Positions 3,001-55,308 are shown, counted from the stretch's first letter. The stretch: 64,000 nt of DNA from Piromyces finnis finn (GCA_002104945.1 MCFH01000093.1:55147-119146), one strand, 5' to 3'. Program-made: numbers and translations. The notes: generated by a model not told the origin, from the letters alone.

Positions 3001-4234
3001 AACTATTAGAATTAATTGTTGAATGTTGAGATTGAAATTGTGTTTGTTGTAGATCTGGAATATTTTCATGATGGGAAACTTGTTGAAGATCTTGTTGAAG
3101 ATCTTGTTGAAGATCGGATTGTTGATGAGATTGTTGAACTGATTGTTGAAATGATTGTTGAATAGAATGTTGATGTTTATTAGAAACTAAAATTTTACGT
3201 TTGAGAGTGGAAAAAGTGTATTTGTGATTCCTTCTACTACGAGCTGAAAAGGAAATTGAGGTAACTGAAAGTTTCTTCTTTAACATGTGTAAGATTTTAA
3301 TACAATCTTTTGATGAACCATGAACCTTGACTAAGAAAAAGTGATCATTGAAAGTCTGAAAATATTTAACACTAATAATTGAATTAAATTTATCTTCTAG
3401 AATAACCTCGAGTTTTTCCCATAGCATATTTACTGACCATGATCGAATACCACGGATAAAGAAGGAGCGAATATCATCTAAGGGGATACCATAAGACCGG
3501 GTACCACGTCTGATATAATTCTTATCTTTAATATAAAGGACTGACATGATAATTAATTCTAATTAAAAAATATTGAATATAAAATAAATACTAATAAAAA
3601 TTATAAATATAACGTATATGGAAAAAAATTTGTCTCTCTCTCTCTTCTTAAAAGTACTGGATAGTACAAAAATTGTTACGATGCTTTGTTTAAAGTTTCT
3701 TTTTTTTTTTGAATTCTAGTTGTAAATTTTCTTTAAAAATTCTAGTTTTGGTTTGTTGTTAGTAAATTCGATTCGCTTTTGACACTAAACTTGTTTGACT
3801 TTACTTTTCATTAAATATTTAAATTGGTAAAAAATTTGAATCAAGAATGTCGACACCAGAAAGCTTGTGAATAGTATTTTTACATGATGTAGAGTGAATC
3901 AGTCTCTTACAAGAACAATACAACAATAGCTACATGAATATAAAAATACAATGCAAATGCTAAAGTTGACTACATTGGATTCTTACAAGAGAAGAGTAGT
4001 ACTACATGAATACATGAATAAAAGAAAAAATACAGCAACAAAATGTATTACTCTTCTAATTAAATACTATACAAACTTACCTGAATATCAAACATTCAAC
4101 TTATTCATCAAATACTTAAATTCGATGAATAAAATGTTTTTTAATCGCTCAGTACCATGAGCTTAGTCCTAATAATTTTCCCTTAAAGACTAACCAAGCA
4201 TCCATTGCGCAATACTTGGATTTAATTCTTTCTA

Positions 4235-4237
<3 letters not shown>
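1..4237 (-). mobile_element. Non-LTR (LINE-type, APE+RT) retrotransposon copy D; 3' end runs off the window; mosaic of a near-identical 5' part and a diverged, deleted 3' part
   Basis: About 720-4237 is nearly identical to copy A by eye. About 1-715 is the same family but carries many substitutions and internal deletions. The 5' UTR ends inside repeat unit 2 at 4237. Confidence 0.93.
665..3547 (-). pseudogene. Truncated LINE polyprotein ORF (960 aa): RRM-like, APE endonuclease, N-terminal part of RT; premature stop just before the FADD motif
   Basis: APE motifs SWN, QET, GDFN, IDH, SDH. RT motifs GPDGIP, YRGISL, QFGFR, LDLRKAYDSV, GVRQGCPLSP. The CGA (Arg) codon of copy A is TGA here. Confidence 0.9.
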
Positions 4238-4277
<40 letters not shown>

Positions 4278-4838
4278 GGCATCAAATATTTTAAACTTTA
4301 TTATTAATTTAATTAAAATTATAATACATGTAATATAAAAATTAAAATAAAATAAAAATAAAAAAAATATGTTTAAATAAACACAAATGAATAAAAATTG
4401 GGTATAATGTATTCTAGTAATTTTAATTAAAGTAAGAAAGCCACTATCATACTAAAGTATAATAATTGTATTTGACTTCCAATGGGACACCGAGCCAAAG
4501 ATCAAAATTTTGTCATGGAACAAAATTATGATCTCCATTGGTTGCGCTGGCCCTCCTGGCCTGTCTTACTGTTTCTTCAGCATTGACGCTCTTGGATGTT
4601 GCTTCAAACCTTTTGAACATTGACCATTGCTGGCCAATAGCAAAAGGCATGATTTTGGTTAGAAGTTCCGCGGTTACCGTCAAGAATGGTATTCCTTCGT
4701 TAGTACCAGATTGAATCTGACGCTTACAAAGTTCTTTCCATTCCCTTGAATTGTAATTAATATTATTAAAACTTCTTCCCCCAAGAAGGAATTTAAATAT
4801 TTTACTGCACACACTAGAATAATCATACACATTAATAT
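4238..4838 (-). mobile_element. 5'-truncated LINE copy E (about 600 bp: last ~105 codons, 3' UTR, poly(A))
   Basis: T-run 4238-4274, then the family 3' end (aacggcatcaaat...). The match to A stops at ...cacattaatat (4838). The ORF at 4513..4830 is the polyprotein C-terminus. Confidence 0.93.
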
Positions 4839-4861
4839 AGGTGTGATTTGACTCGGTAGGA

Positions 4862-5048
4862 TTTTTTTTTTTTTTTTTTTTTTTAAACTTTATTGTTAAT
4901 TTAATTAAAATAATAATAAAGCTTATAAAAAATAAAATTAAAAATAAAACACCGAGGCAAATATCAAGGAGTTAAGAATATTTTAAATAGGTATTATTTA
5001 CATTTTTTTTTTTTCGTGCTTTTGTACTTTTGTAAAATGAAATAAACC

Positions 5049-5052
<4 letters not shown>
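4862..5052 (-). mobile_element. Relic F: 3' end of a related poly(A)-tailed retroelement; its continuation lies at 18135 onward, after removing insertion C
   Basis: 23-nt T-run (4862-4884). Next, aaactttattgttaatttaattaaaat matches the main-family 3' UTR at 26/27. The motif acaccgaggcaaatatc (4949-4965) matches main-family acaccgagccaaagatc (4487-4503) at 15/17. Confidence 0.6.
5041..5052. repeat. TSD of copy C (aataaaccaaga), partner at 18135-18146
   Basis: Identical 12-mer (13 with the ambiguous T) next to the poly(T) at 5053 and next to the 5' junction at 18134. Confidence 0.9.
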
Positions 5053-5094
<42 letters not shown>

Positions 5095-6588
5095 GGCATC
5101 AAATATTTTAAACTTTATTATTAATTTAATTAAAATTATAATACATGTAATAAAAAATTAAAAATAAATAAAAATAAAAAAAATATGTTTAAATAAACAC
5201 AAATGAATAAAAATTGGGTATAATGTATTCTAGTAATTTTAATTAAAGTAAGAAAGCCACTATCATACTAAAGTATAATAATTGTATTTGACTTCCAATG
5301 GGACACCGAGCCAAAGATCAAAATTTTGTCATGGAACAAAATTATGATCTCCATTGGTTGCGCTGGCCCTCCTGGCCTGTCTTACTGTTTCTTCAGCATT
5401 GACGCTCTTGGATGTTGCTTCAAACCTTTTGAACATTGACCATTGCTGGCCAATAGCAAAAGGCATGATTTTGGTTAGAAGTTCCGCGGTTACCGTCAAG
5501 AATGGTGTTCCTTCATTAGTACCAGATTGAATCTGACGCTTACAAAGTTCTTTCCATTCCCTTGAATTGTAATTAATATTGTTAAAACTTCTTCCCCCAA
5601 GAAGGAATTTAAATATTTTACTGCACACACTAGAATAATCATACACATTAATATTCACCGGATTATTAGAACTATTACTATCATTAACTAAATTACTATC
5701 TAAATTAGAATTATTATCTTCACTATTGCTATCATTATTAATATTATTATTTCTATTACTACTATTGTTATTATTACTATTGTTATTATTACTATTGTTA
5801 TTATTATTATTGTTACTATTACTATTACTGTTATTGCTATCTCTACTGACATTATCAATTTCATTATTATTGATAGGACTATTGGAATTACGTTGACTGA
5901 AAAAATTTAATAGCTGGACTATGGAATCATAATGTTTAATACGGATATCTCTAAATGTTGGACAATCTAATAACCAATGTTTAATACTTTGATCTCCACA
6001 CTTGCAACATGGACAGTAGTTAGGACAAACTGGATCAACAAATTTAGCAGCTTTGGCAACTCTAGCATCCAACTTATATCCGCTTCTTGCTTTCAATAGC
6101 CAGTAGAAGCCATAGGCAAACTCTGGGTACTCATAACATAATTTAATAAAATCTTTAGTTTCAATAAATTTATTATCATCATAATATTGCGCTTTGATTG
6201 AATTCCCTTTGAGATCTTTCCAATAAAAGTTTTTAACTGCTTTAACATCTCCATGCTTCTTTAGTTTTTTTTCAAGTGTCCTACTTGATTTGCACCACGT
6301 GTATTTTCTAAATTTAGGAATGTAATTGACAAGGTGTGAGATAATACAATTTGAGTTTTTCCATTTGTTAAAACATCTAACCTGAGCTAACGCACATTTG
6401 GCTGACAATGGAGGAATATTCAAATCTTTTGAGATAGAGTATAAAGATATAAACGATACGGCTTTATGAACTCCGGCAACCCATCGTATTCCTTTGTTAA
6501 CATGCTTCTGAGCAATCCTAGACCTAGCTTTGTTGGATCCAAGTAATGGTGCAAAGTATGAAACTCTGCTAATCACTTGAGAGTTAAG

Positions 6589-6591
<3 letters not shown>
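5053..6591 (-). mobile_element. LINE copy C, 3' segment (5'-truncated copy split by insertion of copy A)
   Basis: T-run 5053-5091, 3' UTR, and ORF C-terminus 5329-6591 with the CPCCKC...HWLLDC finger. The poly-K start of the listed ORF 5329..6639 is just the poly(A) tail of copy A. Confidence 0.93.
6580..6591. repeat. TSD of copy A (agagttaagtac), partner at 17992-18003
   Basis: Identical 12-mer (13 with the ambiguous T) at both junctions. Confidence 0.9.
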
Positions 6592-6631
<40 letters not shown>

Positions 6632-6869
6632 GGCATCAAATATTTTAAACTTTATTATTAATTTAATTAAAATTATAATACATGTAATAAAAAAATTAAA
6701 ATTAAAATAAAAATAAAAAAAAATATGTTTAAATAAACACAAATGAATAAAAAATTGGGTATAATGTATTCTAGTAATTTTAATTAAAGTAAGAAAGCCA
6801 CTATCATACTAAAGTATAATAATTGTATTTGACTTCCAATGGGACACCGAGCCAAAGATCAAAATTTTT

Positions 6870-9800
6870 TCATGGAACAAAATTATGATCTCCATTGGTT
6901 GCGCTGGCCCTCCTGGCCTGTCTTACTGTTTCTTCAGCATTGACGCTCTTGGATGTTGCTTCAAACCTTTTGAACATTGTCCATTGCTGGCCAATAGCAA
7001 AAGGCATGATTTTGGTTAGAAGTTCCGCGGTTACCGTCAAGAATGGTGTTCCTTCATTAGTACCAGATTGAATCTGACGCTTACAAAGTTCTTTCCATTC
7101 CCTTGAATTGTAATTAATATTGTTAAAACTTCTTCCCCCAAGAAGGAATTTAAATATTTTACTGCACACACTAGAATAATCATACACATTAATATTCACC
7201 GGATTATTAGAACTATTACTATCATTAACTAAATTACTATCTAAATTAGAATTATTATCTTCACTATTGCTATCATTACTAATATTATTATTTCTATTAT
7301 TGTTATTATTACTATTGTTACTATTACTATTGTTACTATTACTATTGTTATTACTACTATTGTTACTATTACTATTAATGTTATTACTATCTCTACTGAT
7401 ATTATCAATTTCATTATTATTGATAGGACTATTGGAATTACGTTGACTGAAAAAATTTAATAGCTGGACTATGGAATCATAATGTTTAATACGGATATCT
7501 CTAAATGTTGGACAATCTAATAACCAATGTTTAATACTTTGATCTCCACACTTGCAACATGGACAGTAGTTAGGACAAACTGGATCAACAAATTTGGCAG
7601 CTTTGGCAACTCTAGCATCCAACTTGTATCCGCTTCTTGCTTTCAATAGCCAGTAGAAGCCATAGGCAAACTCTGGGTACTCATAACATAATTTAATAAA
7701 ATCTTTAGTTTCAATAAATTTATTATCATCATAATATTGCGCTTTGATTGAATTCCCTTTGAGATCTTTCCAATAAAAGTTTTTAACTGCTTTAACATCT
7801 CCATGTTTCTTTAATTTTTTATCAAGTGTCCTACTTGATTTGCACCACGTGTATTTTCTAAATTTAGGAATGTAATTGACAAGGTGTGAGATAATACAAT
7901 TTGAGTTTTTCCATTTGTTAAAACATCTAACCTGAGCTAACGCACATTTGGCTGACAATGGAGGAATATTCAAATCTTTTGAGATAGAGTATAAAGATAT
8001 AAACGATACAGCTTTATGAACTCCGGCAACCCATCGTATTCCTTTGTTAACATGCTTCTGAGCAATCCTAGACCTAGCTTTGTTGGATCCAAGTAATGGT
8101 GCAAAGTATGAAACTCTGCTAATCACTTGTGAGTTAAGTACTAGTTTTTTGAAAGGAATAGGAATATTAGGATTTCTTAAGAATTTACTGACTGAGAAAA
8201 GTCCTTTCAAAACCTTGTTATTAAGAGCTTTAATTACTGGTTTAAGGGACAGATTCTTATCAAATGGAACACCAAGATAAGTATAGCAATCAGTAGTTGG
8301 AATGGGTTGTCCTGCTAAGTAAAATGTTGGATCTCTCTTGTTCTGATTTTCTATTGATTCAGGACGAATCACCATCGTTGAACATTTCTGGATACCAAAT
8401 TCCATTTCATTATACAGTGCCCATTCATTAACTCTTCTAAGCATCTTTTTTAAGCATCCTCTTGTTGGAGCACAAATAACTATATCATCTGCAAAAAGTC
8501 CACCACAGCATCGAGTGTCACCTAAACTGACTCCTAGATCTTCGCACTCTCTAAATATATCATTAATAAAGAGATTAAAGAGAATAGGAGAAAGAGGGCA
8601 TCCTTGACGGACTCCTTTCTTCACATCAAAAGATTTCGAGAATTGTCCATCTAATTTGACATTAGCCTTAGATGTTAAATATAAATTTTTGATAAATTGT
8701 AAACTCTTACCTCGGATTCCTAAACAATCTAATTTATGGAGAATATTACCGATTGGGACTGAATCGTATGCTTTCCTGAGATCTAAAAAGGCCAAATATG
8801 TCTCTTTATTATCTAATTGACGTCTACGGCATATTTCTTGGATTGAAATGAAAAGACTGATACTTTCTTCCTTTTTTCGAAAACCAAATTGTTCAGGTCT
8901 AATGAAATTATTCTTTAGACCATATTCTGAGATTCTAGTGGTGACAATTTTGGAAATCAACTTAATACCATTATTGATAAGTGATATACCTCGATAGTTA
9001 TCACAATCTGTCAAATCTCCCTTCTTAGGAATAGAAACAATACTGGATTCATTCCATGAGTTGGGGAAATCTCCATCCCAAATACGGTTAAATAATTTAA
9101 GAATAAAATTTAAACCATGAGCATCATTATCTGAAGTAGTATTACCAGAAGAATTATTATCTGTAGCATTATTAGAATCATTACTTGATGGAATTAATGC
9201 TTTGTAAAATTCAATTGGAATACCATCCGGACCTGATGCTTTATAATTTGGAGTAGAGAGGATAGCTGACTTGACTTCATCAATACTAATATCTTGGTTG
9301 ATATCCCACTCATCAAGCATAGGAAGTGAAAAACGTTTATTCATTGGTTCTTCATACCAATGCTCCAAATCAAGACTTACACCACTTGGATCTGATGCAA
9401 GATTTTCGAAATGATCATGCCACACATCTAGTTGTTCTTCCGTAGCAACAACTAATTCTCCATTTTTATTTTTAATTGGTTGAGCAATAAAGAAAGAATC
9501 TTTTCCTATTTTTGCAGTTTTCTTGATCCATTTCCAGGCCTTCTTAGGATTATGACTCTTCATATACTCACATCCTGTTTTAATCCAATGAAGATATTCT
9601 TGTTTCCTAAATTCATTACATCTTTTGTGGATGTAATCAATGAGCTTACGGTAGATTTTAATTCTTTTAATAAATTCATCTATATCATAAATTCTTTCTT
9701 TTTTAAATCTCTTATACAACTTCATTTTGATTTTTTGAAGATTAAAAATTTGTTGTGAAATATGAAATGAAGACTTTATAACATTATTTGCTGAGGTAAT

Positions 9801-11393
9801 ACTGAGCTCGTCTGCAATTGAAAAAGCAGTTGAAGTAAACTCTTTGGAAAGTTCATCTGTAGAAACATTAGGATCGTTGAATTTTGCTGAAAGTATTTGG
9901 AATTTATTATGACTGAGAATAGATTCCTTTTCTTCAATACATTTTAATCTATTCCATTTCAGAATTTTCTTAGGAACATTAAAGTCATTAGAAAAATCTT
10001 CCATAGGAATAATTTTACCATTAATAAGAAGTGGCTTATGGTCTGATACAGGATAAAAATTATTTATAAATGATCCTGAGTGAATAAGATCTTTCATCTT
10101 CGAATTGATAAGAGCATGGTCAATGTCGGAAGATTGATCACCTCGAGTCCAAGAGATAGTCGACCCTCTAAGCGGAAGAATTTCCCAATCTCCTAATCCA
10201 TTAGTTGATAACCAGTTGGATAATTTTACTTTAGACATATTAAAATCACCAACAAGAATCGATGGATGGGATGAATGAGTTTGTAACCACAAGCGAACTT
10301 CTAACTTTGCATGATCAACATAGATGTTGTGATGACTATGAGGCATATAAACATTTCCAATCGAGCATTTGAATCTATTCCAAAGACTAAAAGTATAAAT
10401 AGAAATAATATACTTTCCAGAGAAGTTTTCAAGTGAGGCTTGACATGAATTGTGAAAACCTAAATATAAACCTCTCATTCCCGGAACTGATTCGTCAGCT
10501 TTCTTGAAAAAGTGTCTATAGTTTCGCAAAGTAACACGACAAGGATAATCTGTATTCGAACCAGAACCATTACCAGTTTCTTGGAAACATAAAAATAATG
10601 GTTTGAAAATAGCTGTGAAATAGCTAATACTATCTCTCTTTTCGTGATTCCACCCATTGGTGTTCCAACTAAGACAAAAAGAAAAGTTATCAGGCTTGTT
10701 GGATGAGGAAGAATCGTTGCTATTATTATTATAATTAAAGTCATCGTTATTAATGGATGATGCATCAGAGGAATAAGTAGAACTATTACTAGATGGCTGT
10801 GAAACTGAAGAACTATCAACTATTGAACTGTTATCAGAGTTGATAGAACTATTAGAATTAATTGTTGAATGTTGAGATTGAAATTGTGTTTGCTGTAGAT
10901 CTGGAATATTTTCATGATGGGAAACTTGTTGAAGATCTTGTTGAAGATCTTGTTGAAGATCGGATTGTTGATGAGATTGTTGAACTGATTGTTGAAATGA
11001 TTGTTGAATAGAATGTTGATGTTTATTAGAAACTAAAATTTTACGTTTGAGAGTGGAAAAAGTGTATTTGTGATTCCTTCTACTACGAGCTGAAAAGGAA
11101 ATTGAGGTAACTGAAAGTTTCTTCTTTAACATGTGTAAGATTTTAATACAATCTTTTGATGAACCATGAACCTTGACTAAGAAAAAGTGATCATTGAAAG
11201 TCTGAAAATATTTAACACTAATAACTGAATTAAATTTATCTTCTAGAATAACCTCGAGTTTTTCCCATAGCATATTTACTGACCATGATCGAATACCACG
11301 GATAAAGAAGGAGCGAATATCATCTAAGGGGATACCATAAGACCGGGTACCACGTCTGATATAATTCTTGTCTTTAATATAAAGGACTGACAT
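6870..11393 (-). CDS. Intact single-ORF LINE polyprotein (1507 aa): RRM-like N-terminus, Q/S/N-rich linker, APE endonuclease, reverse transcriptase, CCHC zinc finger, Asn-rich spacer, C-terminal domain
   Basis: Uninterrupted ORF with APE motifs (SWN, QET, GDFN, IDH, SDH), RT motifs (LDLRKAYD, GVRQGCPLSP, FADD, YTYLG) and CPCCKCGDQSIKHWLLDC. Confidence 0.95.
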   Translation of the reverse strand: MSVLYIKDKNYIRRGTRSYGIPLDDIRSFFIRGIRSWSVNMLWEKLEVILEDKFNSVISVKYFQTFNDHFFLVKVHGSSKDCIKILHMLKKKLSVTSISFSARSRRNHKYTFSTLKRKILVSNKHQHSIQQSFQQSVQQSHQQSDLQQDLQQDLQQVSHHENIPDLQQTQFQSQHSTINSNSSINSDNSSIVDSSSVSQPSSNSSTYSSDASSINNDDFNYNNNSNDSSSSNKPDNFSFCLSWNTNGWNHEKRDSISYFTAIFKPLFLCFQETGNGSGSNTDYPCRVTLRNYRHFFKKADESVPGMRGLYLGFHNSCQASLENFSGKYIISIYTFSLWNRFKCSIGNVYMPHSHHNIYVDHAKLEVRLWLQTHSSHPSILVGDFNMSKVKLSNWLSTNGLGDWEILPLRGSTISWTRGDQSSDIDHALINSKMKDLIHSGSFINNFYPVSDHKPLLINGKIIPMEDFSNDFNVPKKILKWNRLKCIEEKESILSHNKFQILSAKFNDPNVSTDELSKEFTSTAFSIADELSITSANNVIKSSFHISQQIFNLQKIKMKLYKRFKKERIYDIDEFIKRIKIYRKLIDYIHKRCNEFRKQEYLHWIKTGCEYMKSHNPKKAWKWIKKTAKIGKDSFFIAQPIKNKNGELVVATEEQLDVWHDHFENLASDPSGVSLDLEHWYEEPMNKRFSLPMLDEWDINQDISIDEVKSAILSTPNYKASGPDGIPIEFYKALIPSSNDSNNATDNNSSGNTTSDNDAHGLNFILKLFNRIWDGDFPNSWNESSIVSIPKKGDLTDCDNYRGISLINNGIKLISKIVTTRISEYGLKNNFIRPEQFGFRKKEESISLFISIQEICRRRQLDNKETYLAFLDLRKAYDSVPIGNILHKLDCLGIRGKSLQFIKNLYLTSKANVKLDGQFSKSFDVKKGVRQGCPLSPILFNLFINDIFRECEDLGVSLGDTRCCGGLFADDIVICAPTRGCLKKMLRRVNEWALYNEMEFGIQKCSTMVIRPESIENQNKRDPTFYLAGQPIPTTDCYTYLGVPFDKNLSLKPVIKALNNKVLKGLFSVSKFLRNPNIPIPFKKLVLNSQVISRVSYFAPLLGSNKARSRIAQKHVNKGIRWVAGVHKAVSFISLYSISKDLNIPPLSAKCALAQVRCFNKWKNSNCIISHLVNYIPKFRKYTWCKSSRTLDKKLKKHGDVKAVKNFYWKDLKGNSIKAQYYDDNKFIETKDFIKLCYEYPEFAYGFYWLLKARSGYKLDARVAKAAKFVDPVCPNYCPCCKCGDQSIKHWLLDCPTFRDIRIKHYDSIVQLLNFFSQRNSNSPINNNEIDNISRDSNNINSNSNNSSNNNSNSNNSNSNNSNNNNNRNNNISNDSNSEDNNSNLDSNLVNDSNSSNNPVNINVYDYSSVCSKIFKFLLGGRSFNNINYNSREWKELCKRQIQSGTNEGTPFLTVTAELLTKIMPFAIGQQWTMFKRFEATSKSVNAEETVRQARRASATNGDHNFVP

Positions 11394-12162
11394 GATAATA
11401 AATTCTAATTAAAAATATTGAATATAAAATAAATACTAATAAAAATTATAAATATAACGTATATGGAAAAAAATCTGTCTCTCTCTCTCTTCTTAAAAGT
11501 ACTGGATAGAACAAAAATTGTTACGATGCTTTGTTTAAAGTTTCTTTTTTTTGAATTCTAGTTGTAAATTTTCTTTAAAAATTCTAGTTTTGGTTTGTTG
11601 TTAGTAAATTCGATTCGCTTTTTGACACTAAAATTGTTTGACTTACTTTTCATTAAATATTTAAATTGGTAAAAAATTTGAATCAAGAATGTCGACACCA
11701 GAAAGCTTGTGAATAGTATTTTTACATGATGTAGAGTGAATCAGTCTCTTACAAGAAACAATACAACAATAGCTACATGAATATAAAAATACAATGCAAA
11801 TGCTAAAGTTGACTACATTGGATTCTTACAAGAGAAGAGTAGTACTACATGAATACATGAATAAAAGAAAAAATACAGCAACAAAATGTATTACTCTTCT
11901 AATTAAATACTATACAAACTTACCTGAGTATCAAACATTCAACTTATTCATCAAATACTTAAATTCGATGAATAAAATGTTTTTTAATCGCTCAGTACCA
12001 TGAGCTTAGTCCTAATAATTTTCCCTTGAAGACTAACCAAGCATCCATTGCGCAATGCTTGGATTTAATTCTTTCTACTCTCTCAGTACCATGAGCATGA
12101 GTAGACCCCTTGAGAAATTACATTTATTAAATAAATGAAGGCACGTTCCTAAGAGGGCACCA

Positions 12163-12175
12163 AGCATCCATTGCG

Positions 12176-12176
<1 letters not shown>
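12163..12176. repeat. TSD of copy B (agcatccattgcgc), partner at 17872-17885
   Basis: Identical 14-mer. The repeat unit is interrupted at 17870 (gaggg-at-agcatcc instead of gagggcaccaagcatcc), which marks the junction. Confidence 0.88.
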
Positions 12177-12212
<36 letters not shown>

Positions 12213-12445
12213 GGCATCAAATATTTTAAACTTTATTATTAATTTAATTAAAATTATAATACATGTAATAAAAAATTAAAATAAATAAAAATAAAAAAAA
12301 TATGTTTAAATAAACACAAATGAATAAAAATTGGGTATAATGTATTCTAGTAATTTTAATTAAAGTAAGAAAGCCACTATCATACTAAAGTATAATAATT
12401 GTATTTGACTTCCAATGGGACACCGAGCCAAAGATCAAAATTTTG

Positions 12446-15400
12446 TCATGGAACAAAATTATGATCTCCATTGGTTGCGCTGGCCCTCCTGGCCTGTCTT
12501 ACTGTTTCTTCAGCATTGACGCTCTTGGATGTTGCTTCAAACCTTTTGAACATTGACCATTGCTGGCCAATAGCAAAAGGCATGATTTTGGTTAGAAGTT
12601 CCGCGGTTACCGTCAAGAATGGTGCTCCTTCATTAGTACCAGATTGAATCTGACGCTTACAAAGTTCTTTCCATTCCCTTGAATTGTAATTAATATTGTT
12701 AAAACTTCTTCCCCCAAGAAGGAATTTAAATATTTTACTGCACACACTAGAATAATCATACACATTAATATTCACCGGATTATTAGAACTATTACTATCA
12801 TTAACTAAATTACTATCTAAATTAGAATTATTATCTTCACTATTGCTATCATTATAATATTATTATTTCTATTACTATTGTTATTATTACTATTTTACTA
12901 TTACTATTGTTATATTACTATTGTTATTATATATTGTTACTATTACTATTAATGTTATTACTATCTCTACTGATATTATCAATTTCATTATTATTGATAG
13001 GACTATTGGAATTACGTTGACTGAAAAAATTTAATAGCTGGACTATGGAATCATAATGTTTAATACGGATATCTCTAAATGTTGGACAATCTAATAACCA
13101 ATGTTTAATACTTTGATCTCCACACTTGCAACATGGACAGTAGTTAGGACAAACTGGATCAACAAATTTGGCAGCTTTGGCAACTCTAGCATCCAACTTG
13201 TATCCGCTTCTTGCTTTCAATAGCCAGTAGAAGCCATAGGCAAACTCTGGGTACTCATAACATAATTTAATAAAATCTTTAGTTTCAATAAATTTATTAT
13301 CATCATAATATTGCGCTTTGATTGAATTCCCTTTGAGATCTTTCCAATAAAAGTTTTTAACTGCTTTAACATCTCCATGTTTCTTTAATTTTTTATCAAG
13401 TGTCCTACTTGATTTGCACCACGTGTATTTTCTAAATTTAGGAATGTAATTGACAAGGTGTGAGATAATACAATTTGAGTTTTTCCATTTGTTAAAACAT
13501 CTAACCTGAGCTAACGCACATTTGGCTGACAATGGAGGAATATTCAAATCTTTTGAAATAGAGTATAAAGATATAAACGATACAGCTTTATGAACTCCGG
13601 CAACCCATCGTATTCCTTTGTTAACATGCTTCTGAGCAATCCTAGACCTAGCTTTGTTGGATCCAAGTAATGGTGCAAAGTATGAAACTCTGCTAATCAC
13701 TTGTGAGTTAAGTACTAGTTTTTTGAAAGGAATAGGAATATTAGGATTTCTTAAGAATTTACTGACTGAGAAAAGCCCTTTCAAAACCTTGTTATTAAGA
13801 GCTTTAATTACTGGTTTAAGGGACAGATTCTTATCAAATGGAACACCAAGATAAGTATAGCAATCAGTAGTTGGAATGGGTTGTCCTGCTAAGTAAAATG
13901 TTGGATCTCTCTTGTTCTGATTTTCTATTGATTCAGGACGAATCACCATCGTTGAACATTTCTGGATACCAAATTCCATTTCATTATACAATGCCCATTC
14001 ATTAACTCTTCTAAGCATCTTTTTTAAGCATCCTCTTGTTGGAGCACAAATAACTATATCATCTGCAAAAAGTCCACCACAGCATCGAGTGTCACCTAAA
14101 CTGACTCCTAGATCTTCGCACTCTCTAAATATATCATTAATAAAGAGATTAAAGAGAATAGGAGAAAGAGGGCAACCTTGACGGACTCCTTTCTTCACAT
14201 CAAAAGATTTCGAGAATTGTCCATCTAATTTGACATTAGCCTTAGATGTTAAATATAAATTTTTGATAAATTGTAGACTCTTACCTCGGATTCCTAAACA
14301 ATCTAATTTATGGAGAATATTACCGATTGGGACTGAATCGTATGCTTTCCTGAGATCTAAAAAGGCCAAATATGTCTCTTTATTATCTAATTGACGTCTA
14401 CGGCATATTTCTTGGATTGAAATGAAAAGACTGATACTTTCTTCCTTTTTTCGAAAACCAAATTGTTCAGGTCTAATGAAATTATTCTTTAAACCATATT
14501 CTGAGATTCTAGTGGTGACAATTTTGGAAATCAACTTAATACCATTATTGATAAGTGATATACCTCGATAGTTATCACAATCTGTCAAATCTCCCTTCTT
14601 AGGAATAGAAACAATACTGGATTCATTCCATGAGTTGGGGAAATCTCCATCCCAAATACGGTTGAATAATTTAAGAATAAAATTTAAACCATGAGCATCA
14701 TTATCTGAGTAGTATTACCAGAAGAATTATTATCTGTAGCATTATTAGAATCATTACTTGATGGAATTAATGCTTTGTAAAATTCAATTGGAATACCATC
14801 CGGACCTGATGCTTTATAATTTGGAGTAGTGAGGATAGCTGACTTGACTTCATCAATACTAATATCTTGGTTGATATCCCACTCATCAAGCATAGGAAGT
14901 GAAAAACGTTTATTCGTTGGTTCTTCATACCAATGCTCCAAATCAAGACTTACACCACTTGGATCTGATGCAAGGTTTTCGAAATGATCATGCCACACAT
15001 CTAGTTGTTCTTCCGTAGCAACAACTAATTCTCCATTTTTATTTTTAATTGGTTGAGCAATAAAGAAAGAATCTTTTCCAATTTTTGCAGTTTTCTTGAT
15101 CCATTTCCAGGCCTTCTTAGGATTATGACTCTTCATATACTCACATCCTGTTTTAATCCAATGAAGATATTCTTGCTTCCTAAATTCATTACATCTTTTG
15201 TGGATGTAATCAATGAGTTTACGGTAGAATTTAATTCTTTTAATAAATTCATCTATATCATAAATTCTTTCTTTTTTAAATCTCTTATACAACTTCATTT
15301 TGATTTTTTGAAGATTAAAAATTTGTTGTGAAATATGAAATGAAGACTTTATAACATTATTTGCTGAAGTAATACTGAGCTCGTCTGCAATTGAAAAAGC

Positions 15401-16972
15401 AGTTGAAGTAAACTCTTTGGAAAGTTCATCTGTAGAAACATTAGGATCGTTGAATTTTGCTGAAAGTATTTGGAATTTATTATGACTGAGAATAGATTCC
15501 TTTTCCTCAATACATTTTAATCTATTCCATTTCAGAATTTTCTTAGGAACATTAAAGTCATTAGAAAAATCTTCCATAGGAATAATTTTACCATTAATAA
15601 GAAGTGGCTTATGGTCTGATACAGGATAAAAATTATTTATAAATGATCCTGAGTGAATAAGATCTTTCATCTTCGAATTGATAAGAGCATGGTCAATGTC
15701 GGAAGATTGATCACCTCGAGTCCAAGAGATAGTCGACCCTCTAAGCGGAAGAATTTCCCAATCTCCTAATCCATTAGTTGATAACCAGTTGGATAATTTT
15801 ACTTTAGACATATTAAAATCACCAACAAGAATCGATGGATGGGATGAATGAGTTTGTAACCACAAGCGAACTTCTAACTTTGCATGATCAACATAGATGT
15901 TGTGATGACTATGAGGCATATAAACATTTCCAATCGAGCATTTGAATCTATTCCAGAGACTAAAAGTATAAATAGAAATAATATACTTTCCAGAGAAGTT
16001 TTCAAGTGAGGCTTGACACGAATTGTGAAAACCTAAATATAAACCTCTCATTCCCGGAACTGATTCGTCAGCTTTCTTGAAAAAGTGTCTATAGTTTCGC
16101 AAAGTAACACGACAAGGATAATCTGTATTCGATCCAGAACCATTACCAGTTTCTTGGAAACATAAGAATAATGGTTTGAAAATAGCTGTGAAATAGCTAA
16201 TACTATCTCTCTTTTCGTGATTCCACCCATTGGTGTTCCAACTAAGACAAAAAGAAAAGTTATCAGGCTTGTTGGATGAGGATGAGGAAGAATCGTTGCT
16301 ATTATTACTATTATTAAAGTCATCATTATTAATGGATGATGCATCAGAGGAATAAGTAGAACTATTACTAGATGGCTGTGAAGCTGAAGAACTATCAACT
16401 ATTGAACTGTTATCAGAGTTGATAGAACTATTAGAATTAATTGTTGAATGTTGAGATTGAAATTGTGTTTGCTGTAGATCTGGAATATTTTCATGATGGG
16501 AAACTTGTTGAAGATCTTGTTGAAGATCTTGTTGAAGATCGGATTGTTGATGAGATTGTTGAACTGATTGTTGAAATGATTGTTGAATAGAATGTTGATG
16601 TTTATTAGAAACTAAAATTTTACGTTTGAGAGTGGAAAAAGTGTATTTGTGATTCCTTCTACTACGAGCTGAAAAGGAAATTGAGGTAACTGAAAGTTTC
16701 TTCTTTAACATGTGTAAGATTTTAATACAATCTTTTGATGAACCATGAACCTTGACTAAGAAAAAGTGATCATTGAAAGTCTGAAAATATTTAACACTAA
16801 TAACTGAATTAAATTTATCTTCTAGAATAACCTCGAGTTTTTCCCATAGCATATTTACTGACCATGATCGAATACCACGGATAAAGAAGGAGCGAATATC
16901 ATCTAAGGGGATACCATAAGACCGGGTACCACGTCTGATATAATTCTTGTCTTTAATATAAAGGACTGACAT
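12446..16972 (-). pseudogene. Frameshifted polyprotein ORF of copy B
   Basis: 1-bp deletion at about 14708 (tctgagt versus tctgaagt in A and D) and disruption in the Asn microsatellite at about 12910-12930. These split one ORF into the three listed pieces. Consensus errors cannot be excluded. Confidence 0.85.
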
Positions 16973-17622
16973 GATAATAAATTCTAATTAAAAATATTGA
17001 ATATAAAATAAATACTAATAAAAATTATAAATATAACGTATATGGAAAAAATCTGTCTCTCTCTCTCTTCTTAAAAGTACTGGATAGTACAAAAATTGTT
17101 ACGATACTTTGTTTAAAGTTTAAAGTTTCTTTTTTTTTGAATTCTAGTTGTTAACTTTTTTTAAAAATTCTAGTTTTGGTTTGTTGTTAGTAAATTCGAT
17201 TCGCTTTTTGACACTAAACTTGTTTGACTTTACTTTTCATTAAATATTTAAATTGGTAAAAAATTTGAATCAAGAATGTCGACACCAGAAAGCTTGTGAA
17301 TAGTATTTTTACATGATGTAGAGTGAATCAGTCTCTTACAAGAAACAATACAACAATAGCTACATGAATATAAAAGTACAATGCAAATGCTAAAGTTGAC
17401 TACATTGGATTCTTACAAGAGAAGAGTAGTACTACAAGAATACATGAATAAAAGAAAAAATACAGCAACAAAATGTATTACTCTTCTAATTAAATACTAT
17501 ACAAACTTACCTGAATATCAAACATTCAACTTATTCATCAAATACTTAAATTCGATGAATAAAATGTTTTTTAATCGCTCAGTACCATGAGCTTAGTCCT
17601 AATAATTTTCCCTTAAAGACTA

Positions 17623-17869
17623 ACCAAGCATCCATTGCGCAATGCTTGGATTTAATTCTTTCTACTCTCTCAGTACCATGAGCATGAGTAGACCCCCTTG
17701 AGAAACTACATTTATTAAATAAATGAAGGCACATTCCTAAGAGGGCACCAAGCATCCATTGCGCAATACTTGGATTTAATTCTTTCTACTCTCTCAGTAC
17801 CATGAGCATGAGTAGACCCCCTTGAGAAACTACATTTATTAAATAAATGAAGGCACGTTCCCAAGAGGG
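17623..17869 (-). repeat. Two tandem 124-bp structured units forming the LINE 5' end (copy B); equivalent in A at about 12035-12176 plus 17872-17990; partial in D at about 4185-4237
   Basis: Direct repeats 17623-17745 and 17746-17869. Each has several inverted repeats and the palindrome ATTGCGCAAT. Confidence 0.92.
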
Positions 17870-17871
17870 AT

Positions 17872-17991
17872 AGCATCCATTGCGCAATACTTGGATTTAA
17901 TTCTTTCTACTCTCTCAGTACCATGAGCATGAGTAGACCCCCTTGAGAAACTACATTTATTAAATAAATGAAGGCACGTTCCCAAGAGGGA
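17872..17991 (-). mobile_element. Displaced extreme 5' end of copy A
   Basis: 12158-12162, the 14-bp TSD and 17886-17990 rebuild an exact 124-bp unit. It ends in ...cccaagaggg, the same terminus as B. Confidence 0.88.
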
Positions 17992-18134
17992 AGAGTTAAG
18001 TACTAGTTTTTTGAAAGGAATAGGAATATTAGGATTTCTTAAGAATTTACTGACTGAGAAAAGTCCTTTCAAAACCTTGTTATTAAGAACTTTAATTACT
18101 GGTTTAAGGGACAAATTCTTATCAAATGTCCCTT
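17992..18134 (-). mobile_element. LINE copy C, 5' segment
   Basis: Encodes LKPVIKVLNNKVLKGLFSVSKFLRNPNIPIPFKKLVLNS, which joins seamlessly to VLNSQVISR at 6591. Bounded by the TSD copies at 17992-18003 and 18135-18146. Confidence 0.9.
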
Positions 18135-18652
18135 AATAAACCAAGATAACATCAAAATTAAATTTTATAATGTGTTTCTCTCTCGCCAAACAATGCAAAT
18201 TCTTAATACTATTTAAAACCTTCTTCCTATTTCTTTCCTTTAAAAATTCCTAAATCTAAAACTTCATCTCAAAACTATATAAAATTTTCAACCTTTTATA
18301 TTTATATTATTACACTCTATTTTATTTTTTTCTTTATTTAATAAATTAAGGATAAAAAAAAATAAAAACTTTATTAATATTATTGTTTATTATTAAAATT
18401 ATATTTATTTCCTTTGTTAATAAATTAATTTCATTGTTAATAAATTAATTTCATTATTTTCTATTCTTTTTTTTTATTATTTTTGTTTATTGTTTGTATG
18501 ATTATGTTATAATTTATTAAATTGATTTTATTTTTATTTTAAATTATTTTAATATACTTTATATAAATGCCAAAACACATTGTTATAAAGCTATTATTGC
18601 ATTAATTGGATTTATATTTTTATTTTCTTAATTTAATATAAATATAGTTCAA

Positions 18653-19364
18653 TTAACATAATTTGTCATCGTTTTGAGCCTTGGTATTTAAGATAAGGGC
18701 AACAATTAAACCGTAAAGACCTAAAACTTCAGCGAAAATAAGAATAAGAATCATACCGACGTATAACTTTGGTTGTTGAGCAGTACCACGAACACCAGCA
18801 TCACCAACAATACCGATAGCAACACCAGCAGCGAGACCAGCGAGACCGACAGAAAGACCACAAGCTAAGTGAATGAAAGCGTCAGATAATAACATTCTAG
18901 CCTTAATACCACCGGAACAGATAACAGAAACAATTAAACCGTAAATACCAATAATACCAGCCATAATAACTGGAATAATACACTTCATGATTAAATCTGG
19001 CTTCATAACACCCATGACGGAGATACCGACACCAGACTTAGCAGTACCATAAGCAGCACCAAAACCTTTTTATTTTCAAATTATAATTATTTTATTAGTA
19101 TATCTTACCATATTTTTTATTTTATTCTAAATCATTTTAACTATTTCCAATTTTTTATACTATTTTAAATATTTACAGGCAAAGACAGTAGCTGCGGCAC
19201 ATCCCATAGTACTGAAGAATGGAGCGTAAGCTGGGCCTATATATTTATTTATATTTATTTTATTTTATATACATTAATTATTACACTTCAACATTTTTCT
19301 TTATTTATTTTATTTAATCTATTTTATACTAACAGGCGTCAGAGAAAGTTAAAGCTTGAGACAT
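18653..19364 (-). CDS. VMA3: V-type ATPase 16-kDa proteolipid subunit c; exons 19334-19364, 19177-19236, 18653-19065
   Basis: Spliced translation [63 protein letters not shown]...[20 protein letters not shown]. Canonical GT-AG introns and the conserved Glu. Confidence 0.97.
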
Positions 19365-21323
19365 TTTTAATATTTTATTTTTCTATTAAATATATGTTTT
19401 ATTTTTTTCGAATTATGTAAATTGATTGATTGAAATTGATTTAAATAAATTATTTTTTTTAAATTATTTTAATTTTTTTTTATTTTTTTTTTTTTGAGAA
19501 TTTTCGTTTATTTATATATTTGTATATATTCAAATTATATTAAAATAAAAAAAATATTTATTAGTTTTACTCCAATATTTTTTTTTTTTAAACTTTTCCA
19601 AATATTTAAAAAATTATTTATTTTAAAAATAGGCAATTACTTTTTAGTGTTTTGGTTTTCTTTTCTTAAAATTTTTTTAATTTTTTTGTTTATTATTATT
19701 TTTTTTTTTCAAGAAAATGTTTTTAAACTTAGTCTTAAGAAAAAAATATTTTTTATATTAGGATTTGAAATTCTTAATAATATATTCAAAATCAATTACT
19801 CTAATATATTAAGATCATTATCGTGATGTCATTCAGCCAAAATTTATAAACCAATCATGAATGTAACTGTAGTATTTTTATTGGATTTCCATCAAATCAA
19901 AGTATTAAATAATTTTGGGCTGAAATAATATATATAATAAATAAATCCTTTTTTTTCATACAAAAATCAAATTTATTTTTTTTATCCATAATTTAATTAT
20001 TTAAAAATAGATAAATTTAATTTGATAATAATATAAATTTTTATAACTAATATACTTTGTGTAATATTAAATTCTGACTAAATAACCAAAATTAAAAAAA
20101 AATTAATAATATATAGACTCTTAAAATTATTCTAATCTATCGTTAATTATCATTGTTTAACTTATAAATACATTTTGATAATTACATTATGTAGTTAAAT
20201 GTATTTAAAAATGGATATAATTATTGGTTGAGGTTTTGAATATAATATGATGGTTGGATAAAAAATAGTATCAAAAAATACTATTAATAATTATAATATT
20301 ATCTATTATATATTGTGTTTAAAAAAAGATAAATAAAAAATTAATCGATAATTAATTCAAAATTTGGAATATGTATATTAAATAAATATGATAAGATAAT
20401 AAATAATTACCTAATTATTTTTATATTTATAATTATTATAAATAATATAAAGAAAAAAAAATATATAGTAAACATTTTAAAAATTTATATATATTTTTTA
20501 ATTTTACAATGGTTTTATTATTAAAAAAAAAAAAGTGTGACATATTAAAAAGTATTCATGTTAAAAGTATGTACATAGTCACCAAATATTTCATCGAATT
20601 TTTATAGATTAATATTTATTTCTGGGAAAAAAGTTAACAACAACAACACTTCAATATCTTCAATATACTCTTTCTAAAAATGAAAAGTTTAAAATATTTT
20701 AAATTTTATTCATTATTAAATTTTAATAAATAATAAAATGAAATTGATAAATTATGATTTGATGACGATTTCTAGATAGATAAATTTAACTATTTAATAT
20801 TTTTTAATTTTGATTGAATGGTTGAAGTAGGAATAAAGGAAGAGCGAGTTAAACGTTTGTGGTTAAGGTTGAAGGCTTATTATATATAATGAAAATAAAA
20901 AAATATTTTTATAATTAATGCAATATGCCAATAAACTTTAAATTATAGAAAACCAAAAGAATACAATTATTTTTAACTTTGATTTTATTTTTTTAAAATT
21001 ATAGTAAATGCGTTTTATTTTTTTATAATAAACTAACAATATCATGATAAGCATTAATATGTCACTTTTTAATTTACATTCCTCTTGAATAGTGTACTTT
21101 TTTAAAATTTTATTTATTATTCAAAGTATTATTATTTTCATTTAATACATTACCTTTTATGTTAAAAAAAGGTAATATTCATAATTAATAAATAAAATTG
21201 TTTTTAGCATTAATGCATATATTAATGTGCTTATTATGTACTAAAAATTTTTATATATTAAATTTTATTATTTATTATTTAATAAAATTATTATGGACTA
21301 TTAAAATTTTTTTAACTTATATA

Positions 21324-32800: not shown

Positions 32801-34016
32801 TGCTTCTACTCCATATGTTAAGAAGTACTGGGATGTTCTTTCCAGAAAAACTAATGTTTTAATGCAACAAGAAAATGTTCAAAAGGTTATTACCAACCAA
32901 TACGTTAAGACAACTACTGATGCTATTAAGGATGCTTATCACATTTGGTGTGATGGTGTTAAGGTTTCCTATGTCTATCTTACTAACAGAGGTCCAGAAA
33001 CTGGTGGTGCTAAGAATTGGAAGGATGCTACCAGCAAGGTTAGCATTAAGAAGGATATTAGAAGTTCAATTGACTTTACTAAGAGTTTCTTTAAAAATGT
33101 CATTGAAAAATTAGAAAAGGAAGACAAACATTCTTTTGGTAGTCATGAAAAAAGAAGTGGTTCAAAAATTGTTAATGCTAAAAACCAATCCAAAGATAGT
33201 TCATTACCAACAAAGAAGGGTCCAAAAGTAGCTCCAGAAATGCAAAAGCCAAGTAATGGATACAAAATTGTTGTTAACAATGAAAATGCCAAGAAAATCA
33301 CCAAAGAAAGAGTCAATCAAGCCAATAATATTAATATGAATGATACTAAAAATATTGCCAAGGAAAAAGCTAAAATTAAGCAAGAAGTTAAGAGAGTTGT
33401 AAAGGAAGAATATAAGAACAACATTTCTAAGCAAATTGCTAAAGAAAAAACCGAAGCTGCCAAAAACATTGCCATGTCTAAGCAAATTATCAAAGAAGAA
33501 GTTGAAACTACCAAACAAGTTGCTATGGATAATGCTATTAATTCTGAAGCTAAGCAAGCTGTCGAAGATAACGTTGAAAATACTGAAGTTGTTATGGAAA
33601 GCACCTCTAGTTCTGATGATAATCAAGTTGTTAATGACAATGTTGAAAGTACTAAACAAGTTGCTATGACCAAGGCTGTTGTTAAGGAAGAACATGAAAC
33701 TACTAAACAAGTAGCAATGACTAAGGCTATTGTTAAGGAAGATCATGAAGCTACTAAACAATTAGCTATGGAAAACGCTTCTTCTAGTTCTGATGATAAT
33801 CAAGTTGTTAATGACAATGTTGAAAGTACTAAACAAGTTGCTATGACCAAGGCTGTTGTTAAGGAAGAACATGAAACTACTAAACAAGTAGCTATGACTA
33901 AGGCTATTGTTAAGGAAGAACATGAAACCACTAAACAAGTAGCTATGACTAAGCAAATTGTTAAAGAAGAGTATGAAACTACAAAACAAGTTGCTATGGA
34001 TAATGCTACAAATTAA
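29069..34016 (+). CDS. TMEM214 (DUF2359)-like membrane protein with a long repetitive C-terminal tail; ORFs 29069, 30551 and 32043 appear to be one spliced gene
   Basis: N-terminal WNEVKK. Helical segment LIWVCMQ...ELWMEYFLNAL...VKLLNKVL resembles the TMEM214 core. The exon at 31983 is in frame with 32043 (60 nt upstream). Hydrophobic segment SIILVILLSLSL. Internal exon boundaries are approximate. Confidence 0.55.
29750..29841. repeat. (ATA)n intronic microsatellite
   Basis: Direct reading. Confidence 0.95.
33480..34010 (+). repeat. Coding tandem repeats: 51-bp (17-aa TKQVAMTKAxVKEEHET) units plus a 177-bp higher-order duplication
   Basis: ctagttctgatgataatcaag occurs at 33607 and 33784 (177 bp apart). 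KQVAM recurs in the translation. Confidence 0.9.
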
Positions 34017-55100: not shown

Positions 55101-55308
55101 TATTGTACATTGGTCCATTATTCTGTGGTACCATTTGATTATTTGGATAATACATACTATTATACATATTATCTACACCTTTACTTGGAGAAAATGGAGA
55201 TTGTTGATGATGACCACTGAAATAATCTTGAATAAATTCTTGATTATTTGGAGTGTTAATTCTTGGAGGAACATTACCTCTTGACTGTGAAGCTGTTTGT
55301 CTCTTCAT
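52156..55308 (-). CDS. Tristetraprolin/TIS11-family tandem CCCH zinc-finger mRNA-decay protein (1050 aa)
   Basis: [25 protein letters not shown] and [25 protein letters not shown] with canonical lead-ins and 18-aa spacing. The remainder is N/S/P-rich low complexity. Confidence 0.93.

Follow-up and report, generated by a model that had tools for sequence, protein, structure and literature searches.

The window, a 64-kb stretch of Piromyces finnis DNA, holds six co-oriented copies (A–F) of one LINE family that inserted, as the preliminary description had proposed, by successive TPRT events into or next to the family's own copies. Three levels of nesting are proven by exact target-site duplications (TSDs) and pure T tails, with B inside A inside C; no support was found for a fourth, outermost level in which C would lie inside F. 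We lean towards reading the array as a pile-up of a young, abundant Neocallimastigomycota LINE with a loose tendency to land on itself.

Architecture of the nest

Each proven level is bounded by its own TSD, and the three pairs described earlier were exact at all six sites. The duplications measure 12 bp for C (aataaaccaaga, identical at 5041–5052 and 18135–18146), 12 bp for A (agagttaagtac, identical at 6580–6591 and 17992–18003) and 14 bp for B (agcatccattgcgc, identical at 12163–12176 and 17872–17885); since the next base is T, the duplications of C and A could both extend by a further 1 nt. The pure T tails of E, F, C, A and B (37, 23, 39, 37 and 33 nt) agree with the homopolymers of 23–39 nt first noted, and a blastn map likewise placed all six copies (A–F) on the minus strand. 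The features are as follows.

1–4237, minus: copy D (mapped by blastn against copy B), the oldest LINE copy, extending past the left window edge
4238–4838, minus: copy E, a T37 tail (4238–4274) and a 564-nt 5'-truncated 3' fragment
4839–4861, no strand: 23-nt orphan filler between the E 5' end and the F tail, unique in the window
4862–4949, minus: F, a short old tail fragment
5041–5052, no strand: left copy of the C TSD
5053–6591, minus: 3' part of copy C, with a T39 tail (5053–5091), ending with the left A TSD (6580–6591)
6592–12176, minus: 3' part of copy A, with a T37 tail (6592–6628), ending with the left B TSD (12163–12176)
12177–17871, minus: copy B, full length, with a T33 tail, body, two 124-nt monomers and 5' terminus
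17872–17991, minus: right B TSD (17872–17885) and the first 5' monomer of A (17886–17991), reaching the canonical 5' terminus of A
17992–18134, minus: right A TSD (17992–18003), 5' part of C (18004–18128) and tccctt (18129–18134)
18135–18146, no strand: right copy of the C TSD
18346–19366, minus: VMA3, the neighbouring gene (Pfam ATP-synt_C and RNA contigs)

Two copies lie inside members of their own family, C being the host of A and A the host of B; each guest has its own TSD, and guest and host share tandem orientation within this window. Without its insert, A becomes a colinear 5,654-nt element with 0.85% mismatch to the 5,662-nt B; it is full length, carries an intact 1,507-aa ORF and sits in the ORF of C. 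Its 3' part runs from the tail through the ORF (6870–11393), the 5' UTR and a degenerate monomer to monomer 2. Copy B, inserted in the first 124-nt 5' monomer of A, is full length but frameshifted, its ORF interrupted at 14707, where 1 nt is deleted, and again near 12860–12940, where a low-complexity region carries indels; its 5' terminus is the canonical ...cccaagaggg plus two extra nucleotides. C, which landed in single-copy DNA, is a 1,631-nt 3' fragment (~1.63 kb) that is colinear with B after insert removal and, like D and E, 5'-truncated, here within the ORF near sense position 4020. The tccctt at its 5' end is an inverted copy of aaggga at 18107–18112, 16 nt away, and loose contig ends at 18128 represent the normal continuation of other LINE copies. 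Both copies of the A TSD carry an 'a' specific to C where intact copies have 't' (contigs of other LINE copies read ...CACTTGT before 17993), which ties both junctions to one host copy.

To the left, copies D, E and F follow one another head to tail, and no TSD can be demonstrated for them within the window. The 5' end of D is cut within monomer 2 (sense position about 203), and internal segments of ~530 bp and ~64 bp have been lost from D. The tail of E adjoins a D monomer after ...ttctttctactc; no TSD is recoverable for E. In a DNA contig from another locus, the corresponding monomer position is linked to a LINE 5' terminus (17870 to 17902), which suggests that this site is used repeatedly. 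F, previously taken for the relic that hosts C, resembles the LINE solely over its T23 and ~65 nt at 77% identity, and C inserted ~90 nt beyond this 88-nt tail fragment. Local alignment, word-7 blastn and tblastn found no LINE similarity past 4949, and no DNA or protein similarity spans the C insertion site; on these three alignment searches we rejected F as host.

On the right, the nest borders single-copy DNA (18200–18600 in DNA contigs) and then VMA3, which encodes the V-ATPase proteolipid subunit c (Pfam ATP-synt_C, E = 1.5e-26). The gene is spliced (intron joint 19063 to 19175 in RNA contigs), very highly expressed and oriented like the six LINE copies. Its stop codon lies 507 bp from the nest, as the earlier estimate of about 500 bp had it, and its mRNA poly(A) site, marked by a T18 loose end in RNA contigs at about 18346, lies about 200 bp away.

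The element, its age and its abundance

The element spans 5.7 kb and comprises two 124-nt 5' monomers, an 898-nt leader, a single ORF and a tail of ~A35. Besides a ferredoxin/RRM-like N-terminal domain and a conserved C-terminal region, the ORF encodes an APE endonuclease, a reverse transcriptase and a Cys motif. Pfam matches cover the reverse transcriptase (RVT_1, E = 7e-36, 124 bits, residues 788–1043) and, N-terminal to it, the endonuclease (PF03372, 31 bits against a cut-off of 24.5, residues about 241–452; precomputed in most homologues), together with a weak zf-RVT match. Poly(A) tails, variable TSDs, 5' truncation and the lack of LTRs are all present as marks of APE-type LINEs. By its reverse transcriptase, APE domain, tails, TSDs and truncation, the element is an APE-type non-LTR retrotransposon. 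Among solved structures, human L1 ORF2p comes closest (E = 3e-33), the PDB containing only L1 and R2 among LINEs; with the weak zf-RVT match, this is an indirect hint of the L1 clade. The N-terminal domain has a good predicted fold (pLDDT 84) and the conserved C-terminal region a poor one (pLDDT 57); a structure-based search for a targeting domain, Foldseek with the N-terminal domain, returned generic ferredoxin-like folds (best E = 1.8e-3, TM 0.4–0.5).

Relatives of the ORF, at 40–69% identity, came only from gut and rumen metagenomes, Orpinomyces and Neocallimastix. A search of JGI metagenome contigs with two 3'-end patterns returned no family members and two chance hits in unrelated DNA, and a paper search gave no literature on LINEs of the anaerobic gut fungi phylum.

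The copies are young, in line with the initial impression of recent insertion. Private substitutions rank D (2.0%) above C (1.1%) and C above A and B (0.3–0.5%), an order that agrees with the nesting. Contig depth summed over the LINE is ~2000x that of the single-copy flank, equivalent to roughly 10^3 copies and perhaps 10–25% of the ~56 Mb genome. Full-length copies dominate, DNA depth being flat across the 5' 3.9 kb. Contigs from RNA runs also cover the LINE, all with the frame-intact base at 14707 that accounts for only about a quarter of DNA contig depth there; the family appears to be transcribed.

Landing sites and competing explanations

The nest arose by three ordinary TPRT insertions: C entered single-copy DNA, ~200 bp beyond the poly(A) site of VMA3 and ~90 nt from an old LINE tail fragment, A entered the ORF of C, and B entered the first 5' monomer of A. 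Under our preferred account, the pile-up with loose self-landing, the underlying tendency would be a loose, non-sequence-specific and orientation-biased landing in or beside resident copies, strongest at the promoter-like 5' monomer region, as in Zepp and Cnl1, and high copy number would amplify it. In our preferred guess, recognition would depend on the DNA or chromatin of resident copies, whose monomers might bind a promoter factor or lie in open chromatin; avoidance of the surrounding 12–20% GC DNA might act alongside this or instead. Base pairing with the incoming RNA we do not favour.

Two of the three LINE-hosted insertions in the window (A, B and E) fall within monomers, which occupy ~4% of the length of the element (P ~0.006 under uniform sites). 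One orientation for all six copies has a chance of 1/32. DNA contigs from run X1 contain nine further joints between a canonical 5' terminus and a lower LINE coordinate, usually with 1–5 extra nucleotides between the partners. Seven of these nine lie in monomers, three at one shared 30-nt offset, and each occurs at single-copy depth and hence comes from another locus. Their coordinates fit co-oriented nests, though the joint table gives no strand and hence shows no excess of co-oriented joints relative to inverted ones. Together, these positions argue for a narrower signal, a preference, if not an exclusive one, for the 124-nt 5' monomers. The A-in-C site and the C site lie outside monomers and share no motif.

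Some monomer-to-monomer joints in X1 could be array variants, not insertions.

As first described, there is no fixed target sequence: the nick contexts differ (gtac/tag, gcgc/aat and aaga/taa), the three proven targets are unrelated in sequence with no single conserved target, and no shared motif is evident among 4–5 nick sites.

With roughly 10^3 copies, chance alone should produce a few co-oriented three-level nests in the genome. That the family targets itself, as had been proposed, cannot be concluded from the nest alone when copies number ~10^3 and fill 10–25% of the genome. Chance with retention is a possible, if less probable, explanation: a low-specificity endonuclease without targeting would insert into tolerated DNA of which the family already fills a large share, new copies would often strike older ones, and inverted nests would be lost, as close long inverted repeats are unstable, while co-oriented nests stay. 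The ~2000x depth fits this, as do the three nick contexts without a common motif, and N(f/2)^2 with N ~1000 and f 0.1–0.2 gives about 2.5–10 co-oriented three-level nests. The window was moreover chosen post hoc for its striking look. Against chance, uniform insertion would not lead one to expect the monomer excess seen in the window and the X1 joints. The adjoining 46 kb, mostly non-coding at 12–20% GC, holds zero LINE copies by blastn, so that free space was not limiting; the same copy-free DNA weakens the earlier safe-haven argument. All five later copies landed within ~200 bp of LINE DNA (P ~3e-5, assuming uniform insertion within the window and leaving orientation out).

A more ambitious reading seems unlikely to us: the RNP would be steered, always in one orientation, to promoter monomers in resident copies that may themselves be transcribing, and a transcription-coupled or RNA-guided step would do the steering in place of a sequence-specific nuclease. 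If true, LINE homing would have a mechanistically new form, in which the element makes its own landing pads.

Guidance by RNA in particular, a conjecture in which pairing of LINE RNA with DNA (R-loops) or co-transcriptional tethering leads the RNP and fixes orientation, we regard as improbable. All copies are co-oriented, the family is apparently transcribed (RNA-run contigs, frame-intact base at 14707) and the preferred region, the 5' monomer, is a likely promoter. However, the sites (monomer, mid-ORF and unique DNA) bear no fixed relation to a homologous segment, C sits in single-copy DNA, and the TSDs and extra nucleotides resemble ordinary TPRT. The nicked strand would also be the RNA-pairing strand of the R-loop, and a strand paired with RNA is an unlikely substrate for APE-type LINE nucleases.

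Similarly doubtful is regional targeting, in which the 3' flanks of highly active Pol III or Pol II genes would attract the family, with arrays growing at a small landing zone and self-nesting a by-product of repeated hits. The array does begin ~200 bp beyond the VMA3 poly(A) site, co-oriented with a gene among the most highly expressed here. Yet A and B landed 1.5–7 kb, by present coordinates, away from the first landing point, their hosts are older copies and not the gene flank, and the window lacks tRNA or other Rfam RNA genes.

An assembly artefact, with reads from different LINE copies threaded into a false nest, is very improbable: the copies are 98–99% alike, the 13-kb nest exceeds many reads of the period, independent contigs show only the C 5' junction and the sampled B-junction words occur in no listed run, but a mis-join would not leave canonical termini and tails flanked by matched 12–14 bp duplications, one host-specific variant is shared by the two A TSD copies, three 5' junctions and unique flank lie within 275 bp, and insert removal gives back standard-length elements. 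Direct read-contig support thus covers one of six junctions, the C 5' junction, which record 5 of the X1 contigs bridges (18100–19434, 0 mismatches, single-copy depth); for the B 5' junction, a k-mer search of public runs with two sampled words listed none.

TRF called 17623–17991 as a single three-copy array. We rejected a reading of B plus the A tip as a single three-monomer element with a truncated copy behind it: at 17869–17871 the sequence has the canonical terminus plus two extra nucleotides in place of the internal 'cacca' linker, this boundary is succeeded by a TSD, and A returns to standard length without B. Nesting in monomers mimics monomer-number variation in this way and misleads repeat annotation and assembly.

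Relation to known self-nesting and targeted LINEs

AT-richness and modular 5' repeats suggested Dictyostelium TRE5-A. Like the present case, the tRNA-gene-targeted LINEs TRE5-A and TRE3 involve an AT-rich compact genome, head-to-tail LINEs with modular 5' repeats and repeated stacking at one landing zone; here, by contrast, there is true nesting, and no Pol III gene lies within about 50–100 bp of an element end, ARAGORN and Rfam each giving 0 hits in the 64 kb. We rejected the assignment on the gut-fungal protein relatives of the ORF, the lack of a tRNA gene and the report that TREs do not integrate into each other (PMC5391098). R2, R1, Tx1L and TRAS/SART share recurrent fixed-orientation insertion in repeated host sequence, but each has one defined target, whereas the three proven sites here are unrelated. 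Mouse L1 resembles this element in its tandem promoter-like 5' monomers (here 2 x 124 nt) and precise terminus; mouse L1 is not known for preferential insertion into its own monomers.

Tandem-oriented self-nesting has precedents in Zepp and Cnl1 (PMC8226300; 10.1101/2022.06.10.495668), and Zepp forms clusters of nested elements (PMC3446292). By analogy, the nesting seen here probably represents the Zepp/Cnl1 habit and no new targeting principle. Zepp and ZeppL are L1-clade LINEs of Chlorella, Coccomyxa and Chlamydomonas that form one cluster per chromosome, at the centromere or telomere, mostly of 3' ends, whereas full-length copies dominate here. The 3.4-kb Cnl1 of Cryptococcus neoformans and C. 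deneoformans builds subtelomeric arrays; the gut-fungus LINE, from a distant phylum and with no Cryptococcus proteins among its ORF homologues, is 5.7 kb long, has 5' monomers and roughly 10^3 copies, and its array is internal, beside a housekeeping gene. This array is not a telomeric or centromeric cluster, lying next to VMA3 with genes on one side, but that restriction concerns location only and is no argument against shared behaviour. If the bias holds genome-wide, the hundreds of full-length, young, TSD-bearing copies that this genome offers would form a natural data set for self-targeting by a nuclease without sequence specificity. The junction-by-junction record presented here points to the 124-nt 5' monomers as a favoured landing zone and describes a previously undescribed, very abundant gut-fungal LINE that acts like Zepp and Cnl1.

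Junctions and order of the nested copies

The LINE copies were mapped by blastn, comparing the window with B, the copy that lies innermost. They are confined to 1–18134 and lie on the minus strand throughout, and the same search found no LINE copy in the other 46 kb of the window.

LINE copies in the window, with identity to B
1–4238, minus strand: copy D, 78–98%
4242–4838, minus strand: copy E, 99%
4862–4949, minus strand: copy F, 77%, short match only
5059–6600 and 17993–18128, minus strand: copy C, 97.9%
6596–12176 and 17872–17991, minus strand: copy A, 98.7%
12177–17871, minus strand: copy B, the reference
4238–4274, 5053–5091, 6592–6628 and 12177–12209: T tails of the four young copies, uniform and pure
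Insertion site of C, as empty-site sequence: aataaaccaaga

The preliminary description had claimed a four-level nest, F > C > A > B, and its three target-site duplications (TSDs) all proved exact. Removing B with one TSD copy leaves an A of 5654 nt, colinear with the 5662-nt B at 0.85% mismatches, and removing A leaves C as a colinear 1631-nt 3′ fragment. A and B share a canonical terminus (...cccaagaggg, plus strand), followed by 1–2 extra nucleotides and then the TSD. In each of its two copies A's TSD starts with 'a', a position occupied by 't' in other copies across the genome, so both A junctions derive from one host copy; loose ends (...CACTTGT) before 17993 show the 't' of the other copies in all four runs. 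Private substitutions amount to 2.0% in D, 1.1% in C and 0.3–0.5% in A and B, a divergence order that agrees with insertion of C, then A, then B. The three-level nest is real, a kind of behaviour already known.

The outermost level did not hold. F consists of a T23 tail and ~65 nt resembling the LINE 3′ end; past 4949 neither DNA nor protein comparison showed any similarity to the element, and the DNA contigs show 18200–18600, to the right of C, to be single-copy. C therefore lies ~90 nt from a tail fragment and not demonstrably within an element. Head to tail, D, E and F make up a chain from which no TSD was recoverable within the window, and a unique 23-nt filler parts E from F. The five pure T tails measure 37, 23, 39, 37 and 33 nt, the 23-nt tail belonging to the older F and the 33–39-nt tails to the four young copies.

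Reading B and the tip of A as a single three-monomer element was rejected: their boundary (17869–17871) lacks the internal 'cacca' linker and is terminus-like. TRF reported 17623–17991 as one array (121-nt unit, 3.0 copies, 97% match), whereas its true make-up is the two monomers of B and the first of A, with terminus and TSD between. An insertion nested in monomers can look like monomer-number variation, and such mergers can hide nests.

The C 5′ junction (18104–18134) carries six extra nucleotides, tccctt, which repeat in inverted form the aaggga found at a distance of 16 nt; the pair gives a small fold-back (snap-back) signature at C's truncated cDNA end. D has an internal deletion of ~530 bp at 330–460 with ATCA microhomology at its edges, the right edge lying 10 nt from the position at which A entered C, and a second deletion of ~64 nt that spans C's truncation point. 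These matches are probably coincidence.

The element, its protein and its neighbours

Copy A contains one intact ORF of 1507 amino acids with an APE domain, RVT_1 and a Cys motif that matches zf-RVT weakly. Its 5′ end comprises two 124-nt monomers and a degenerate third, and the ATG is at sense position 898. A first reading of the element as Dictyostelium TRE5-A was wrong: relatives of the ORF, which share 40–69% identity with it, were found in metagenomes of gut and rumen, the named ones being Orpinomyces and Neocallimastix. The closest solved structure is human L1 ORF2p, a match that alone assigns no clade.

Two regions of the protein are conserved among these relatives. Residues 1–130 (11004–11393, minus strand) are confidently predicted as beta-alpha-beta-beta-alpha-beta followed by a helix (pLDDT 84, pTM 0.70), and Foldseek against PDB returned generic ferredoxin-like matches only; this domain may correspond to the RNA-binding portion encoded by a separate ORF1 in other LINEs. 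The C-terminal ~110 amino acids (residues 1395–1507; 6873–7211, minus strand) are kept in relatives down to 40% identity, with LLG and P invariant; helical and poorly predicted (pLDDT 57), they are a candidate region for recognizing the target or the RNA.

B, being innermost, is the youngest copy. Its ORF is split into 762 and 553 amino acids by a 1-nt deletion at 14707, and it has further indels (low-complexity region, 12860–12940). The intact form at 14707 occurs in A, in D and in every RNA-run contig, and in X1, a DNA sequencing run assembled into contigs, the intact base accounts for only ~24% of depth. Possibly B was already dead on arrival (mobilized in trans) or belongs to a frameshifted subfamily, or the deletion may be an assembly indel.

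Genes in the window
18346–19366, minus strand: VMA3 (V-ATPase proteolipid), introns 19064–19174 and about 19235–19340
32043–34016, plus strand: signal-peptide protein with long TKQVAMTKAxVKEEHE-type repeats, no Pfam match
48822–50201, minus strand: carboxylesterase
52156–55308, minus strand: CCCH zinc-finger protein, 1050 amino acids

In RNA runs VMA3 is spliced and, at very high depth, very strongly expressed, and its poly(A) site, near 18346, is separated from the nest by about 200 bp; words from this stretch were found in runs including sheep-gut, pig-gut and faecal samples. Since the LINE array starts 200 bp downstream and is oriented the same way, read-through from VMA3 would enter the LINEs in sense. 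Spacers between the other three genes have a GC content of 12–20%.

Abundance and probable transcription in sequencing reads

Summed X1 contig depth was 3.3–5.4 × 10^5 for the LINE versus about 85–290 for the flank and VMA3; such sums are inflated by overlapping unitigs and are not copy numbers, and they indicate ~10^3 copy-equivalents. Depth was flat across the 5′ 3.9 kb, so the majority of copies appear full length. The C 5′ junction is bridged by an X1 contig of 1382 nt that extends from 18100 into VMA3 at depth 155 without a mismatch. The contigs were built from 31-nt words and, judging from word length, should break off at any T run exceeding 31 nt; support for the 3′ junctions was therefore not expected. 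A look-up of the B 5′ junction in public runs, sampling two words only, listed no run; the A and B junctions accordingly rest on internal logic.

RNA-run contigs also cover the LINE, always with the frame-restoring base at 14707, and one RNA run is 3′-biased over the LINE where the DNA profile is flat. Together these suggest that intact copies are really transcribed, DNA carry-over being possible for so abundant a repeat.

Insertion mechanism and possible site bias

The insertions are ordinary TPRT. The 3′ ends at the nicks read ...gtac, ...gcgc and ...aaga; none is rich in T, and T:A annealing is therefore not required for priming on the tail. As the preliminary description had already stated, the three sites have no motif in common, which excludes R2/Tx1-style fixed-sequence recognition.

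We do not conclude targeting from the nest alone: with N(f/2)^2, N about 1000 and f 10–20% of the genome, chance would produce ~2.5–10 co-oriented three-level nests, and a striking appearance was the reason for choosing the window. Other observations point to a real bias. Monomers make up ~4% of element length and host two of the three LINE-hosted insertions in the window (B and E; P about 0.006), and all five later copies lie within about 200 bp of LINE DNA despite the adjoining 46 kb being mostly non-coding. At least nine further X1 joints connect the canonical 5′ terminus to a lower LINE coordinate, usually with 1–5 extra nucleotides between, and each is at single-copy depth and hence from another locus. 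Seven of nine among those listed fall in monomers, three of them sharing an offset of 30 nt relative to the terminus, in a table that gives no strand and in which some monomer joints are possibly array variants. The joint 17870→17902 matches the meeting place of E's tail and D, provided that the TSD there is 11–12 nt.

At 1-kb resolution, no non-genic DNA in the window other than that of the LINE exceeds 25% GC. If the element avoided hyper-AT DNA, or required DNA that is nucleosomal or promoter-bound, this would therefore suffice by itself to bring new copies into old ones, and is a cheaper account than RNA guidance. Guidance of the RNP to resident copies by R-loops, as suggested earlier, is conceivable, but nothing supports it, and the hybrid would contain the very strand that is nicked.

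Our literature search found no paper on LINEs of Neocallimastigomycota. To the known behaviour of self-nesting LINEs such as Zepp and Cnl1, the window adds a non-exclusive preference, since ORF and unique-DNA sites occur too, a divergence order that equals the nesting order, and indirect signs, from other loci, of hot spots in the monomers. TREs of Dictyostelium stack but do not enter one another (PMC5391098), whereas copies of the gut-fungal LINE lie inside copies.
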